Shown here piece after piece: positions 14,327 through 58,701 of a stretch of DNA of 64,000 bases. The stretch is taken from sequence record MZ574431.2; one strand, given 5' to 3'. The notes under the pieces are model-generated. The model made no database searches. It was not told the origin of the DNA and worked only from the letters and a program-made list of their open reading frames with translations. Numbering within the stretch: the stretch's first letter is position 1; every line of letters starts with the position of its first letter. A program made the translations under genes and the position numbers.

Positions 14327-15520
14327 ATGCTGATCCCTGACGATCTGCGCATCCTGCGTGCGGCTTTCGAGGCCCTCAACCGCGACATCCGCTTCGTGGG
14401 CGGCTGGGTTCGCGCTTACATGCTGGGCGAGGCGCCCAAGGACATCGACCTCTGCACCGACGCCAGCATCGAGGAAATGAAGGAGATCGCCGAAGCCTGC
14501 GACGTGGTGCTTGATCTCTACCCCACGGGCGAGGAGCATGGCACCATGACCTTCCGCCTCGACAGCGGGCTCTACGAAATCACCTGCCTGCGTCAGGAAA
14601 CCGCCCACGATGGCCGGCGCGCAGACTGCGTGTTCGGGCAGGACTGGGACGCCGATTTGGCCCGGCGTGATCTGACGATCAACGCCATGGCCATGGACTT
14701 CGACGGGCGCCTCTACGATCCCCACGGCGGCGCCGTGGACCTCAAGGCCGGCCGCGTGCGCTTTGTCGGTGATCCGGTTGATCGGATGCGCGAGGACTAT
14801 CTGCGCATCTTGCGCTGGCTGCGCTTCCACGCCCGTTACTCCAAGGGACCGCTGGATTTTGACGCCCGCAACGCCGCCGAGGACCTTCGAGATGGTCTGG
14901 GGCCGATCAAGGCAGTCCGAACCAAGATCGGCTACACCGTCTCTCGCGAGCGGGTCTGGGACGAGATGAAGAAGATCATCGCCGGCCCGCGCTCGGCCTA
15001 CATCCTCTTCCAGATGGTTCGCATGCGCCTGGACGAGCCGCTGGGCTTTGATGGGATCGTCATCGGCGACCGCTACAACGCCGTCGTGCGCGAAACCGCC
15101 GATCCGATCGTGAGGCTGGTGGCGTTGTTCGAGGATACCCGCGACATCGAAGCCCTGGCGACCGATTGGAAATGGAGCCGCGAGGAGCGGAGCCGCGCGA
15201 TCTTCCTGTCCAAGTGCCTCCTGGCCGAAGATGTCGACGTTCTCAGCCTCGTCCTCATGGGCGTGTGCGACAAGGACGCCGCCGAGGACATCTGCATCCT
15301 GCGGGAGGATGCCGACCTTTTGGCCTACGTCCGCCGCTGGACGCCGCCAGAGTTTCCGGTAAAGGGTCAGGACCTCCTAGATTTAGGCATGAAGCCTGGG
15401 CCGCAGATGGGCGTTCACCTTGCCAGCCTCCGCCGCCTTTTCGCCGATCATCGCGGGGGCGTCACCAAAGAACAACTGCTCGCCACCCTGCGCCTGGAGA
15501 TAGACCTGTGCCCGTCTTGA
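14327..15520 (+). CDS. cca: class II tRNA nucleotidyltransferase (CCA-adding enzyme / poly(A) polymerase family)
   Basis: FVGGWVRAYMLG..KDIDL, EITCLR.E..DGRRA, DLARRDLTINAM, EDYLRILR motifs. Confidence 0.92.
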   Translation: MLIPDDLRILRAAFEALNRDIRFVGGWVRAYMLGEAPKDIDLCTDASIEEMKEIAEACDVVLDLYPTGEEHGTMTFRLDSGLYEITCLRQETAHDGRRADCVFGQDWDADLARRDLTINAMAMDFDGRLYDPHGGAVDLKAGRVRFVGDPVDRMREDYLRILRWLRFHARYSKGPLDFDARNAAEDLRDGLGPIKAVRTKIGYTVSRERVWDEMKKIIAGPRSAYILFQMVRMRLDEPLGFDGIVIGDRYNAVVRETADPIVRLVALFEDTRDIEALATDWKWSREERSRAIFLSKCLLAEDVDVLSLVLMGVCDKDAAEDICILREDADLLAYVRRWTPPEFPVKGQDLLDLGMKPGPQMGVHLASLRRLFADHRGGVTKEQLLATLRLEIDLCPS

Positions 15521-27834: not shown

Positions 27835-28469
27835 TCAAGGCCCTGGCCTTCCTCTGCGCCCACGGCGAGTTTGTCCGCCTTGAGGTCAACGACCATCGCA
27901 CCTGCTATGAGTCGCCCGAGCGGAACCTTCGCATGCACTCGCTCCTCCCCGAGGAGTGGTGCAACCAGATCGAGCGCGTCCTGATCCAGGCGGCCGTCGA
28001 GAACGAATCGCCCTTGACCACGGTCAAGGTCTGGACCAACCAGCAGCGCAACGTTGACCGCCAACTGACGGTCGGCGCGTCCTTGCCCATGACCTTGGCC
28101 ATGGCGCTCGATCGCCTGCGGGTCTCCGAGGCGAATGTCATGCCCCTGCCGGAGTTGGAGGAGGACGCCTCCGCGCTCTTGGAGCGCTGCATGGCCTATC
28201 TCTTCTCCAACGCCCTCTCCTGGTATCTGGACGTCCAGCCCTTCTGCCCCGAGGACGCCATGCCTCTCGACGCCCTGATCGAGTGCAACATGGCCGCGCC
28301 AGAGGACTGGATCGGCGAGGAGCCGTGGACGCGTGACTACACCGGTCCGTTCCACGCCCTGATCATCTATCCCGACAACCCTGTGGGAAGCTGGTGCTTC
28401 TACGGCCCGTCCGTGCCGGACCTGCTGATCAAGGGCTATCAGACGCTGAAGGAGTATCGCGCCCAATGA
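27831..28469 (+). CDS. hypothetical protein
   Basis: GTGA/ATGA overlaps. Confidence 0.75.
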   Translation: MIKALAFLCAHGEFVRLEVNDHRTCYESPERNLRMHSLLPEEWCNQIERVLIQAAVENESPLTTVKVWTNQQRNVDRQLTVGASLPMTLAMALDRLRVSEANVMPLPELEEDASALLERCMAYLFSNALSWYLDVQPFCPEDAMPLDALIECNMAAPEDWIGEEPWTRDYTGPFHALIIYPDNPVGSWCFYGPSVPDLLIKGYQTLKEYRAQ

Positions 28470-29308
28470 CCGAGACCAAGGACGCCCTGGGCGACCGGAT
28501 GAAGGCCTACGAGAAGGTCGAGACGGGGCGGCGCTTCATGCCCGGTCTGCCGGTGATCGTGCGCCTGGATGGTCACGGCTTCTCGCGCTTCACCAAGGGC
28601 CTTCAAAAACCCTTCGACATGCGCATGGTCGCCGCCATGGCCGAGACCACCAAGGCCTTGGTCGAGAAGACCCATGCACGCCTGGGCTACACCCAGTCCG
28701 ACGAGATCACCCTGGTCTTCATGCCCAAGGATGACATCGAGCAGTATTTCTTCGCCGGCAAGGTCTTCAAGATGAAGTCCGTGCTGGCCGGCCTGTGCTC
28801 GACCCTCTTCTATCGCAACTTCGAGCGCGAGTGGCTCGCCAGAACCGGGGACGCCGCCCACGACCTTACGGCCCTGACCCGCTACCTGGAGCGCAATCCC
28901 CACTTCGATGCGCGCGCCTTCCAGGTGCCCGTCGACTACGAGGCCGCCAACGCCGTCCTCTGGCGCGTCAAAGACGCCGAGCGCAACGCCGTGCAGATGG
29001 CGGCCCAGTCGCTCTACTCGCAAAAGCAGCTTCACAAGCTGTCGACCGAGACCCTGCGCCGCAAGATCGCCGAGGGTGGCCTGGACTTCGACGCCTATCC
29101 TCGCGCCATCCGCAGCGGCAGCTTCTTCCAGTCGGTCACAGAGCTTCGGCCGATCCCGCCCGAGGCGCTGGAGCGGATGAAGGAGAAAGACCGGCCGGCG
29201 GACGGTATGATGCGACGCGCCTCGGTCCAGGAAGTGGCCGCCGAAGGTCCGGTCGCCTACCGAACGGTCGCCGATCTCCTGGGCATCGTGCCGGTGATGG
29301 ACGTCTGA
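28466..29308 (+). CDS. thg1: tRNA(His) guanylyltransferase Thg1-like protein (3'-5' polymerase)
   Basis: RMKAYE...IVRLDGHGFSRFT...KPFD...GYTQSDEITL...FDARAFQVP...WRVKDAERN signature. Confidence 0.92.
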   Translation: MTETKDALGDRMKAYEKVETGRRFMPGLPVIVRLDGHGFSRFTKGLQKPFDMRMVAAMAETTKALVEKTHARLGYTQSDEITLVFMPKDDIEQYFFAGKVFKMKSVLAGLCSTLFYRNFEREWLARTGDAAHDLTALTRYLERNPHFDARAFQVPVDYEAANAVLWRVKDAERNAVQMAAQSLYSQKQLHKLSTETLRRKIAEGGLDFDAYPRAIRSGSFFQSVTELRPIPPEALERMKEKDRPADGMMRRASVQEVAAEGPVAYRTVADLLGIVPVMDV

Positions 29309-57387: not shown

Positions 57388-57647
57388 GTCTCAGGCTTCG
57401 CAAGACCAAGCCGACCCTCTGGAACGGCAACGGGTTTGGCACCAGCGCCGCCGAATGGTCGCTGGCCGACCACCCCGGCTGGAAGATCACCAAGGCCTAT
57501 GACTGGGAGGCTCACCACGCCGACGGCCGGCGGGTTTCGGCCTACACCCGCAAGGAGCTTCTGGAGAAGCTGGAACCGATCGTCCTAGGACCTCCGTCGG
57601 CTCAAACCGACCCGGCCCCGCTTTTGGTCGACTCAAATCGACCGTAA
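57384..57647 (+). CDS. hypothetical protein
   Basis: GTGA overlap. Confidence 0.7.
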   Translation: MSLRLRKTKPTLWNGNGFGTSAAEWSLADHPGWKITKAYDWEAHHADGRRVSAYTRKELLEKLEPIVLGPPSAQTDPAPLLVDSNRP

Positions 57648-57673
57648 CAGCCCAAATGTCGACTGAAGGCGAT

Positions 57674-57703
57674 AAAGGCCCGGAGGCATCCTCCGGGCCT
57701 TTT
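57674..57703. terminator. bidirectional rho-independent terminator
   Basis: AAAGGCCCGGAGG-CAT-CCTCCGGGCCTTT(T) between convergent units. Confidence 0.9.
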
Positions 57704-57751
57704 GCATGATGTATCAGTCATAATCGGGCATTGTGACTGATATATCAGTCA
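57703..57751. repeat. three TATCAGTCA half-sites including an 18-bp perfect palindrome
   Basis: TGACTGATATATCAGTCA at 57734-57751; a 15/18 copy at 57703-57720. Confidence 0.9.
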
Positions 57752-57754
57752 AAC

Positions 57755-57833
57755 TGGCGGCCCCGGTGGGGATCGAACCCACGACCTCTGCTTTCGGAAA
57801 ACAGCGCTCTCAATTCCGCTGAGCTACGGGGCC
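57755..57833 (-). tRNA. tRNA-Arg (anticodon CCG), CCA encoded
   Basis: Manual cloverleaf: GGCCCCG/CGGGGCC acceptor, GCTC/GAGC D-stem, loop TTCCGAA, GTGGG-TTCGATC-CCCAC, discriminator G, CCA. Confidence 0.92.
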
Positions 57834-57835
57834 AT

Positions 57836-57910
57836 TGGCATGCCCGGCCGGAATCAAACCGGCATCCGGCGCTTAGAAGGCGCTTGCTCTCTTCGTTGAG
57901 CTACGGGCAC
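57836..57910 (-). tRNA. tRNA-Arg (anticodon UCU), CCA encoded
   Basis: Manual cloverleaf: GTGCCCG/CGGGCAT, GCTC/GAGC, loop CTTCTAA, GCCGG-TTTGATT-CCGGC, discriminator G, CCA. Confidence 0.88.
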
Positions 57911-57927
57911 GCAGAAAGGTGGGGCGC

Positions 57928-57975
57928 TTAGCGCCGCCGCCTGATCGTCTTTCTGGTCGTGCCCGAGAAGGTCAT
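57928..57975 (-). CDS. 15-aa Arg-rich leader peptide MTFSGTTRKTIRRRR
   Basis: Codons AGA, AGG, CGG, CGG, CGC; stop 17 nt before tRNA-Arg(UCU); ATG 7 nt after a putative -10. Confidence 0.6.
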   Translation of the reverse strand: MTFSGTTRKTIRRRR

Positions 57976-57981
57976 GATCCT

Positions 57982-58010
57982 CTCGTAACCTATCTGGTCG
58001 GCGCCGTCAA
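57982..58010 (-). promoter_or_regulatory. putative promoter of the leader-tRNA operon
   Basis: TTGACG-17-TACGAG on the minus strand. Confidence 0.5.
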
Positions 58011-58063
58011 CAAATGCGCCATGACGCCTTGCGTGACACGAAGTCTTAGGGCAGATTGCCGCC

Positions 58064-58390
58064 ATGACGATCCTCACCGAAGCTGAATTTCTGGCCGGCC
58101 ACCTGCCTCCCGCCCCGGCGGTCGAGCGCGACTTGGCAGGCCTGATCAAGGTCCTGGCTCAGTCCCTCTATTACGAGGCAGACGATCCTGCGCCGAGCGA
58201 CAACTATTTCAACTATCACGGCGGACGCGGATTTGAGTCGCACCTGCGCAAGGACTACAAGGTCAGCGTGAAGGGCAACATCCTGTCGGCCGGCGCCCGA
58301 GGCGGCGACGACTTCTACAACGTCAACTTCATGGCGCCGGCGCTGTACGATCGCCTGGAGGCCTTCTTCGCCGGAAAGGTCGCACGATGA
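58064..58390 (+). CDS. hypothetical protein
   Basis: First gene after the tRNA unit. Confidence 0.7.
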   Translation: MTILTEAEFLAGHLPPAPAVERDLAGLIKVLAQSLYYEADDPAPSDNYFNYHGGRGFESHLRKDYKVSVKGNILSAGARGGDDFYNVNFMAPALYDRLEAFFAGKVAR

Positions 58391-58701
58391 GCAAGGACCG
58401 TGACCTTCAGGGTCTGACCAACATCATCGAAGGCGCCATGGTCCAGCACGACCTGGATTGCTGGAACCTGCACATCAGCCTCATTCCCGAGGCCTTCTAC
58501 AACTCCGCCGCCGAGCACATCCAGCTTGGCTCGGGCGGGCGGGACTACGATGTCCATCTCTTCGCCGAGGACCTCTATGACGGCCTGGAGAAGTTCTTCA
58601 ACGCGCGACTGAAGGCGCGTATCGAAGCCATGATGGACAAGATGGTCGAGCACGAGAAGCGCTATGTCGAGCACCTCTTCGGGGCGGGCGGCGCGCTGTG
58701 A
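58387..58701 (+). CDS. hypothetical protein
   Basis: ATGA overlap. Confidence 0.75.
   Translation: MSKDRDLQGLTNIIEGAMVQHDLDCWNLHISLIPEAFYNSAAEHIQLGSGGRDYDVHLFAEDLYDGLEKFFNARLKARIEAMMDKMVEHEKRYVEHLFGAGGAL

Follow-up and report, generated by a model that had tools for sequence, protein, structure and literature searches.

Ribosome-mediated leader-peptide attenuators control the trp, his, leu, thr, and ilv operons (PMC1183508). We analyzed a 64,000-nucleotide (nt) stretch of sequence record MZ574431.2 (hereafter, the window), which belongs to a Caulobacter jumbo phage (Bertelyvirus, C1 type), and describe a 15-codon open reading frame (ORF) that precedes two tRNA-Arg genes on its minus strand. 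As in the attenuators of amino acid operons, a short ORF with cognate codons lies at the 5' end of the unit, and the position of the ribosome would select which RNA pairing forms (PMC1183508). The tRNA-Arg unit differs from these attenuators in that the regulated genes would be tRNA genes, the sensed molecule would be the product itself, and the ORF is predicted to be leaderless; in addition, the unit lacks a canonical terminator, and the tRNA acceptor stem would stand in for the 3:4 helix. Because the defining intrinsic terminator is absent, we did not assign the unit to the classical attenuators. The ilv leaders have a closer counterpart in a sibling tRNA unit (unit C, described below), whose leader is also multivalent and has the full 1:2, 2:3, 3:4 architecture.

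Based on its conservation pattern, its geometry, and its family context, we consider it likely that the ORF is translated and serves as a regulatory leader, sensing how the codons AGA, AGG, and CGG are decoded. The fuller proposal is that it is a leaderless regulatory leader-peptide gene of the tRNA-Arg unit, one member of a family of sibling leaders, and that tRNA output rises upon shortage; we judge the case for this proposal to be evenly balanced.

In mycobacteria, leaderless polycysteine short ORFs act as cysteine-responsive attenuators, and the Arg ORF, which has a run of Arg codons, is predicted to be leaderless like them and would likewise exert downstream control (bioRxiv 10.1101/834739). 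Those ORFs respond to cysteine supply and precede protein-coding operons, whereas here the downstream genes are the cognate phage tRNAs. The pheM attenuator of pheST and the T-box, which binds uncharged tRNA directly, also provide feedback on tRNA charging or supply; like the system proposed here, they set translation components accordingly, but their targets are aminoacyl-tRNA synthetase genes, not tRNA genes. A search of Rfam with positions 57640–58070 (E ≤ 1) gave no credible match besides the two tRNAs, with no T-box or other leader family, and Rfam showed no known leader family in the window or at the other tRNA units. In tnaC, regulatory stalling occurs at the extreme end of a short ORF, by a C-rich spacer, and control is Rho-dependent; unlike tnaC, the Arg leader has no conserved inducer-sensing peptide, and its spacer is 17–18 nt. 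In the leader-trailer stalks of rRNA operons, and in the effects of 5' leaders on RNase P, precursor flanks pair with or near mature ends and govern processing. We know of no rRNA stalk or pre-tRNA leader helix that overlaps a translated ORF or whose formation is gated by ribosomes pausing at specific codons.

The phiCbK genome paper mentions no attenuators or leader peptides, and the only RNA elements it reports are tRNAs (PMC3556154). In the full-text literature that we searched, coverage of which is incomplete, there was no description of leader-peptide control of tRNA genes that read the leader's own codons. Attenuation in amino acid operons is known; what would be new is the application of attenuation-type leader peptides to tRNA genes, where they sense their own product.

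Anatomy of the tRNA-Arg unit

A preliminary description, made from the sequence alone, had proposed a promoter, an ORF, two tRNAs, and pairing elements, and all of these were found on the minus strand:

58010–58005, minus strand: −35 hexamer TTGACG; TTGAC or TTTAC is kept in all four phages compared
57987–57982, minus strand: −10-like hexamer TACGAG, 17 nt 3' of the −35 hexamer and 6 nt 5' of the ATG
57975–57928, minus strand: leader ORF of 15 codons, predicted to be leaderless, encoding MTFSGTTRKTIRRRR and ending in TAA (57930–57928)
57965–57949, minus strand: 5' (anti-acceptor) arm CGGGCACG-AC-CAGAAAG, leader nt 11–27
57952–57954, minus strand: AGA, codon 8, a codon for tRNA-Arg(UCU) that falls within the 5' arm of the helix; the sole invariant codon among codons 2–11
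57931–57942, minus strand: AGG CGG CGG CGC run, codons 12–15, on the 5' side of the stop-codon hairpin and within a 17-nt invariant block
57935–57923, minus strand: inner hairpin GGCGC-TAA-GCGCC, whose loop holds the stop codon; C1 and BL47 have an extended stem and then UUCUGCGU, with no terminator call
57918–57904, minus strand: 3' arm CTTTCTG-C-GTGCCCG, the last 8 leader nt plus tRNA nt 1–7, holding the RNase P site
57910–57836, minus strand: tRNA-Arg(UCU), G1-U72, with encoded CCA, 17 nt after the ORF; ARAGORN Arg(tct), Rfam RF00005 56.1 bits
57833–57755, minus strand: tRNA-Arg(CCG), 2 nt after the first tRNA; ARAGORN Arg(ccg), Rfam RF00005 60.1 bits

The leader ORF reads ATG ACC TTC TCG GGC ACG ACC AGA AAG ACG ATC AGG CGG CGG CGC TAA. 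GenBank annotates a longer coding sequence (CDS) in the same frame, gp395c (45 amino acids [aa], 57928–58065, minus strand), which we rejected because it covers the promoter and because an in-frame TAG, 12 nt upstream of the leader ATG, breaks it in CcrSC and CcrBL9; gp395c is probably a mis-annotation of the 15-codon leader. It also shares 2 nt with the start codon of the divergent gene. Within tRNA-Arg(UCU), the D-loop lacks the usual GG (AACGAAGA) and the T-loop is TTTGATT, and the two may form a compensated tertiary pair.

In all four Arg leaders, 29 nt separate the −35 hexamer from the ATG, and the range is 29–33 nt (mode 30) for 16 leader ORFs belonging to three tRNA units. Such spacing would be expected if transcription began at the A of the ATG or beside it, and we infer that the Arg leader starts there. 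The premise of a leaderless mRNA in the preliminary description is consistent with this spacing in four phages, although the start site itself is predicted. In Caulobacter, 375 leaderless mRNAs represent 9.6% of CDSs and are translated with an efficiency equal to that of leadered mRNAs (PMC4117421). The first 10 nt of the leader are single-stranded in the predicted nascent fold. An exact match to the motif TTGAC-N15-GGTTAC occurs once in the window, at the promoter of the Arg unit, and the phage transfer-messenger RNA (tmRNA) gene has a like layout upstream, TTGACA-17-TACAGG with TAGGTTAC. A scan for consensus promoters of the E. coli type made no call at the Arg leader; however, E. coli-type promoter and terminator scans also miss clearly conserved elements elsewhere, so these scans provide a weak negative.

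Conservation of the leader ORF in four phages

The region 57400–58500 is 100% identical in Caulobacter phages C1, C2, and J4 and in two further Bertelyvirus records, and it is 99.9% identical in RB23; more distant relatives are BL47 (92%), CcrBL9 (85%), and CcrSC (81%). We aligned the four distinct relatives C1, BL47, CcrSC, and CcrBL9, whose leaders are otherwise ~60% identical. An indel-free ORF of 15 codons is present in all four (C1, MTFSGTTRKTIRRRR; BL47, MTFSGTIRKTIRRRR; CcrSC, MISTVTIRTVSRRRR; CcrBL9, MTFTATIRTVSRRRR), and its only fully invariant codons are ATG, AGA (codon 8), AGG, CGG, CGG, CGC, and TAA. The 17-nt invariant block CAGGCGGCGGCGCTAAG has P ~0.001 by column shuffling. Indels spare the ORF, with a 1-nt indel occurring just past the stop codon and 10-nt indels upstream. 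Among the other leader codons, variable sites are distributed 3:7:4 over codon positions 1, 2, and 3, which speaks against selection on the peptide itself. A regulatory leader would be expected to show such a pattern if nothing but its reading frame and regulatory codons mattered; in the Arg ORF, what counts would appear to be the start, the frame, the Arg codons, and the stop, and not the peptide.

Scanning IMG/VR with the 5' half of tRNA-Arg(UCU) recovered only CcrBL9 and CcrSC, and a metagenome scan with its unusual D-arm returned only unrelated tRNA arrays and non-tRNA contigs.

Leader ORFs of other tRNA units

Cognate-codon leader ORFs precede four of the promoter-led tRNA units of Dolichocephalovirinae phages. 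Besides the tRNA-Arg unit, these are units A, B, and C, and their features are as follows (positions after an L number are those of the locus so labeled):

MZ574429.2 84230–84720 (L017 48255–48475): leader and terminator of unit C, a leaderless ORF of 30–32 codons (MSKSYRQFVRQIQFVRVNR...), with homologues in L018, L019, L020, L021, L035, and L036
L017 40452–40571 (C1 gp135), L022 237–374 (phiCbK_235), and L023 2146–2283 (Rogue gp083): unit B leaders, annotated as "hypothetical proteins" of 39–45 aa
L017 39772–39837 (C1), L037 303–368, L038 311–376, and L039 219–284: unit A leaders, together with the Glu leaders in L022 and L023
L017 48496–48510, L018 1832–1849, L020 1770–1787, and L021 678–695: mini-ORF after the unit C terminator

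Unit C contains, in order, genes for a tRNA-Tyr-like element, Val, Ile, Val, Gln, Asn, Arg(ACG), and Phe. In C1, a promoter (TTGACA-17-TATAAG-7-ATG) drives a 32-codon ORF, MSKSYRQFVRQIQFVRVNRAGRSRMDDGGTRV. Codons 5–18 of this leader specify solely amino acids of the downstream tRNAs (a run of 14, P ~2e-6), and they include the rare A/T-ending codons TAT, CGT, CAA, TTT, ATT, GTT, AAT, and CGA. The ORF and its hairpin are conserved at ~75% identity across Bertelyvirus, Shapirovirus (phiCbK and Magneto), Poindextervirus (Rogue), Colossusvirus, and Brevundimonas phages, with leader indels only in multiples of three. In a seven-phage alignment, the terminator helix 3:4 is 98.9% paired, with four pairs showing double changes; the antiterminator 2:3, formed by ORF codons CGG-GCG-GGC-C with the 5' arm of the terminator, is 98.6% paired; and helix 1:2 is 92.9% paired. 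Three-way compensations occur in CcrSC (G58A/C139T/G155A) and in Colossus (columns 56, 141, and 153). The terminator was called by our scan in Rogue; the GenBank record of Colossus labels it a predicted rho-independent terminator, and in Karma and Swift the homologous match overlies a "terminator" feature. Based on the cognate run and the three covarying helices, we class unit C as a classical multivalent leader-peptide attenuator placed before a tRNA operon, with every feature of such an attenuator that can be tested in sequence.

The unit C leader is annotated as a gene in Papperlapapp alone, as a 44-aa CDS that begins at an upstream ATG. When IMG/VR was scanned with the conserved core of the leader, the hits were mostly GC-rich contigs without tRNAs, which are chance matches. 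On the 3' side of the terminator, a Shine-Dalgarno-like GGAG is followed by a mini-ORF of 4–5 codons (MTGN, MNNGG, or MTGGD) that abuts the tRNA-Tyr-like gene. The latter is a type-II tRNA-Tyr(GUA)-like gene (L017 48519–48616) between the attenuator and the first annotated tRNA, and it scored 29.6 bits against the tRNA-Sec model.

Unit B encodes tRNAs for Pro, Thr, Lys, Leu (three), His, Ala, and Ser (three), with Trp in addition in C1. Residues drawn from the unit's own set make up 87–95% of its leaders, namely 33 of 38 in C1 gp135 (P 6e-8), 41 of 44 in phiCbK_235 (P 7e-12), and 42 of 44 in Rogue gp083 (P 4e-13), and terminator-like hairpins lie 3' of the ORFs. C1 has tRNA-Trp in unit B and a Trp codon in the leader, whereas phiCbK and Rogue have neither. 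These "hypothetical proteins" are probably leader peptides rather than proteins. Re-annotation as regulatory leaders is probably warranted for C1 gp135, C1 gp395c, phiCbK_235, Rogue gp083, and the 44-aa CDS of Papperlapapp.

Unit A (Glu and Asp) is preceded by an ORF of 20–21 codons with the same leaderless geometry as the Arg leader, and the first 12 nt, ATGACCTTCTCG, are common to the Glu/Asp leader and the Arg leader of C1. CGA-GAG (or GAA-CGA-GAG) and (CGA-)GAT-AC are kept in C1, CcrSC, Colossus, Kikimora, phiCbK, and Rogue, representing six phages and five lineages. In most of these, the rare Arg codon CGA precedes each regulatory codon; in phiCbK and Rogue, CGC is used instead and GAT is not preceded by an Arg codon. 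A hairpin loop contains the stop codon, and the hairpin is followed by UUUUGU (phiCbK) or UUUCGUGU (Colossus). The case for the unit A leader is the conservation of its Glu and Asp codons across lineages.

The Arg genes are arranged differently among these phages. In Rogue and Magneto, Arg(UCU) is at the 3' end of unit C, after Arg(ACG)-like and Arg(CCG)-like elements that were read by eye and have no ARAGORN call. In Bertelyvirus, a separate unit in the opposite orientation comprises Arg(UCU) and Arg(CCG) and has its own promoter and Arg-codon leader, and the unit C leader has CGA in place of the CGG of other phages. At the position of tRNA-Arg(UCU) in Magneto (L036 2374–2451) and Rogue (L018 2831–2908), phiCbK carries tRNA-Gly(UCC) (L019 2773–2850). 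The two anticodon loops differ in the third anticodon base alone (CTTCTAC to CTTCCAC), with a few changes elsewhere, and the phiCbK gene is an apparent anticodon switch.

ARAGORN also identified tRNAs missing from the annotations: Lys(UUU) and Ala in phiCbK and Rogue (at the L018 and L019 sites), Thr and His in Rogue, and Glu and Asp in C1 (L017 39866–39942 and 39967–40042). In phiCbK, there are unassigned gaps at the positions of the Rogue Thr and His genes. According to a 2012 genome paper, these phages have no Thr or Tyr tRNAs.

Pairing between the leader and tRNA-Arg(UCU)

The leader segment CGGGCACG (57965–57958) is the exact complement of C-1 plus nt 1–7 of tRNA-Arg(UCU), and CAGAAAG (57955–57949) complements CTTTCTG (57918–57912). 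As the preliminary description had outlined, the combined helix has 15 base pairs (bp) and a 2-nt bulge and encloses the GGCGC-TAA-GCGCC hairpin. The C1 duplex (−23.9 kcal/mol) is matched or exceeded in stability at 0.23% of 127,850 equivalent window positions. When tRNA nt 1–7 are appended, the C1 leader fold gains −12.8 kcal/mol, compared with −3.8 ± 2.3 in dinucleotide shuffles (P ~0.003); the helix is far beyond chance in both C1 and BL47 (P ~0.003), the latter keeping 7 + 7 pairs. The nascent leader fold of C1 has z = −3.9.

For the C1 leader together with the tRNA, the leader-trapped fold (−57.6 kcal/mol) and the cloverleaf (−57.3 kcal/mol) are isoenergetic, and 86% of the ensemble is leader-paired. 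The statement in the preliminary description that the leader is a better partner than the tRNA's own 3' strand was, at the level of global folds, too strong. The leader helix can form once tRNA nt 7 has been made, ~65 nt ahead of the rival 3' strand, and the barrier between the two folds is estimated at ~13 kcal/mol, which would correspond to a trap on a scale of roughly minutes. Three differences between C1-type and CcrSC-type phages all favor the helix over the acceptor stem in the C1 type: G at leader nt 14, the CTTTCTG partner, and, in the tRNA, U72 (C1 and BL47) in place of C72 (CcrSC and CcrBL9); with no outgroup, these differences are unpolarized. The stop-codon hairpin of C1 has 5–10 bp and is followed by UUCUGCGU; in CcrSC and CcrBL9, the hairpin is in another register and has no U-tract.

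At the first tRNAs of other phage units (Glu, Pro, Met, Cys, Val, and others), shuffling gave P values of 0.03–1.0 for anti-acceptor pairing, and the Arg unit of C1 and BL47 alone stands out. The preliminary description had suggested a search of other phage tRNA genes for cognate-codon leaders with covarying anti-acceptor arms; the leaders are present at the sibling units, but the arms are not a general feature. We rejected the possibility that the CGGGCACG arm is a relic of a third tRNA or a copy of an att site, as positions 57911–58070 had no match to a tRNA model even at E ≤ 1. The likeness of the arm to a tRNA is confined to CGGGCAC-G.

Proposed mechanism

When charged tRNA-Arg(UCU) or tRNA-Arg(CCG) is scarce, a ribosome would dwell on the Arg codons of the leader and cover the hairpin's 5' arm. 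Left free, that arm would in C1-type phages pair with the last 8 leader nt and nt 1–7 of tRNA-Arg(UCU) to form the 15-bp helix, which would bury the RNase P site, compete with the acceptor stem, and adjoin a weak terminator-like hairpin. The net effect would be an increase in mature tRNA output when these tRNAs are short and a decrease when they are plentiful. We infer translation of the ORF, stalling, and the effects on folding, processing, or termination from the arrangement of these elements. In the Arg unit, the competing arm itself contains the regulatory codon AGA, whereas the regulatory codons of unit C are located 5' of the antiterminator arm. Both placements would result in negative feedback: a stall in the Arg unit would mask the arm so that the tRNA folds, and a stall in unit C would free the arm so that transcription continues.

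By analogy with the sibling units, a translation-sensing leader for tRNA genes is well supported. Based on the modeled folds, the anti-acceptor switch is plausible for C1-type phages (C1 and BL47) and specific to that lineage. That the leader holds the tRNA-Arg(UCU) precursor in an RNase-P-resistant form, and that a pause on AGA or the Arg run frees the acceptor strand, is a tentative suggestion that we would rate as doubtful. It is with similar reserve that we suggest that the tRNA's own acceptor stem takes the part of the terminator in classical attenuation, which would make the Arg unit a specialized member of a wider autoregulation of tRNA operons. If real, the folding switch would be a categorically new component. 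The production of backup tRNA upon tRNA cleavage is speculation.

If the general model is correct, phage tRNA supply is not constitutive but is set by a codon-by-codon gauge of decoding capacity. It would provide simple homeostasis of phage tRNA levels against demand in infection, as well as a route for responding to host tRNA depletion or cleavage, and it would explain why units with different tRNA sets have different leaders. The leaders are compact (15–45 codons), the host C. crescentus is a laboratory strain in which leaderless translation is normal, and the model is easily tested.

Several observations weigh against these proposals. The comparison of the Arg leader involves just two well-diverged lineages. 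In CcrSC and CcrBL9, 7 of 8 pairs with the tRNA strand remain, with a central mismatch that is T in one phage and C in the other, and only 1 of 7 pairs of the CAGAAAG/CTTTCTG extension. The leader-tRNA pairing in these two phages is within chance (change in free energy ~−6, P ~0.11; fold z −1.1 and −1.4), and both have the cloverleaf as minimum-energy fold. No compensatory changes were found in the anti-acceptor helix among the four phages, as the tRNA side is invariant. The nearest-neighbor energies leave out tRNA tertiary structure and modifications. The helix can gate the folding of tRNA-Arg(UCU) only, though two leader codons (CGG) belong to tRNA-Arg(CCG); the conservation of these codons hints at an added output at the level of transcription or stability. 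Host tRNA-Arg species read the leader codons too. Enrichment of cognate residues in the unit A leader was not significant in single sequences. A terminator scan of 57400–58400 found no terminator-like site, and there is no canonical intrinsic terminator between the leader ORF and the tRNAs in C1, BL47, CcrSC, or CcrBL9, which tells against the default termination offered as one option in the preliminary description.

Codon usage gave a divided result. In 108 phage CDSs, Arg is encoded by CGC (60%), CGG (15%), AGG (4.9%), and AGA (1.5%), and the presence of four of five leader Arg codons among AGA, AGG, and CGG has P = 0.009 relative to these genes. However, AGA, AGG, and CGG account for 55% of Arg codons in random short ORFs of the window, which gives P = 0.26, and an Arg content of at least one third is found in 3.4% of such ORFs (P ~0.03) and is unremarkable. 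An RRRR end occurs in 0.5% of random short ORFs of the window. The codon-bias argument of the preliminary description holds relative to genes, in which CGC dominates, but fails against the non-coding null, and we rejected codon choice as stand-alone evidence. At the homologous loci, which that description had named as a means of refutation, the codons are kept in all four phages, whereas the complementarity is significant in C1 and BL47 only. Its central idea of a sensing leader is considerably strengthened by the invariant codons, the geometry, and the sibling leaders; the anti-acceptor switch that it attached to this idea is a plausible candidate that is not conserved in CcrSC and CcrBL9.

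Alternative explanations

A classical or near-classical transcription attenuator, in which a stalled ribosome blocks the stop-codon hairpin and RNA polymerase runs into both tRNA genes, would control both tRNAs, in line with the presence of AGA/AGG and CGG codons. Real terminators exist in the sibling units, the Glu/Asp leaders likewise place the stop codon in a hairpin loop before UUUUGU (phiCbK) or UUUCGUGU (Colossus), and the C1 tail UUCUGCGU is similar to the tail of the C1 unit C terminator, CUGCGUUUUC. However, no terminator was called at the Arg leader, the hairpin has just 5 to 10 imperfect pairs, and C1 has a poor U-tract, with none (ACCCCUC) in CcrSC and CcrBL9; we regard this explanation as rather unlikely. 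Unlikely as well, in our assessment, is a combination of coincidence and mutational artifact, whereby the ORF is untranslated, the GC-rich block is kept as a protein-binding or RNA-processing signal, and the helix is neutral (for example, the product of template switching that perfected an imperfect palindrome). The abundance of Arg-rich short ORFs and of AGA, AGG, and CGG in GC-rich non-coding DNA is consistent with coincidence, as are the lineage-specific helix, the presence of only two effective lineages, and the need for the intergenic region to house the divergent promoter of the plus-strand gene at 58064 as well. Coincidence does not readily account for the invariance of the start, the five Arg codons, and the stop but of no other codon, nor for the frame that stays intact despite flanking indels. 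The like promoter-ATG geometry of three other leader ORFs, the 12-nt opening ATGACCTTCTCG shared with the Glu/Asp leader of the same phage, and the demonstrable use of cognate-codon leaders in sibling units also argue against it.

The leader hairpin could instead be an RNase III or RNase E site or a protective 5' stem-loop, with an ORF that is incidental or merely unfolds the hairpin. The 15-bp helix with its inner hairpins in C1 and BL47 (z ~−3.9) and the highly structured 3' trailer, in which palindromes covary, fit such a processing or stability element; because the hairpin is not significant in CcrSC and CcrBL9, and because the invariance of the Arg codons, start, and stop and the leaderless geometry would be left unexplained, we find it improbable. 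Rho-dependent control resembling that of tna would require neither a terminator nor a helix and would act on both tRNAs: a ribosome at the terminal Arg codons or the stop would cover the C-rich spacer (GCGCCCCACCUUUCUGC in C1, GCCGACCCUUGACCCCUC in CcrSC) and block Rho. The Arg run adjoins the stop codon in all four phages, and the spacer has a C:G ratio of ~3:1 in both lineages despite differing sequence, but 17–18 nt followed by a compact tRNA is far below the length of a typical Rho loading site, and we consider this mechanism very unlikely. A functional Arg-rich micropeptide, MTFSGTTRKTIRRRR, co-expressed with the tRNAs would recall the E. coli tyrT operon with its small protamine-like Tpr ORF, and the C-terminal RRRR and R8 are conserved. 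The remaining residues vary freely with no third-position bias, and all five Arg codons are nucleotide-identical in the four phages, which a peptide would not need; a micropeptide is therefore highly improbable.

Phage and genomic neighborhood

The C1-group phages are jumbo siphophages of ~311 kb (Dolichocephalovirinae) with C. vibrioides CB15 as host. The plus strand holds nearly all genes around the locus, whereas both tRNA genes are on the minus strand. The tRNA-Arg unit is bounded by a divergent plus-strand gene (start 58064) and by a bidirectional terminator at ~57672–57699, next to a structured trailer:

57672–57699, both strands: bidirectional terminator hairpin GGCCCGGAGG-ATGC-CTCCGGGCC, with T-runs on each strand, kept in four phages; closes the tRNA-Arg unit
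57701–57753, strand unassigned: structured 3' trailer, an inverted repeat directly 3' of tRNA-Arg(CCG), with an 18-nt perfect palindrome, TGACTGATATATCAGTCA, and a related copy

The arms of the trailer palindrome covary between C1 (ACTGATATATCAGT) and CcrSC (CATGACATATCATG), and the palindrome may serve as a hairpin in the trailer or bind a protein.

In the C1 record, 25 tRNA genes are annotated, and ARAGORN identified 27 tRNAs and a permuted tmRNA, arranged in several units. The two-piece tmRNA gene (L013 8459–8891; MZ574429.2 ~144458–144890) is absent from the GenBank annotation; ARAGORN gives its tag as VNASNDNDVVVSTMTSVKLAA, it matches Rfam RF04321 with 73.9 bits, and its promoter layout matches that of the tRNA-Arg unit. 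The phage also encodes a kit for tRNA maturation and repair that consists of a CCA-adding enzyme, a tRNA-His guanylyltransferase, a polynucleotide kinase/3'-phosphatase, and an RNA ligase, located at ~14327–15520 and 28466–29308 in the window and, outside it, at L014 35159–36217 and L013 20993–22156. This kit bears on the idea that the phage copes with tRNA damage.

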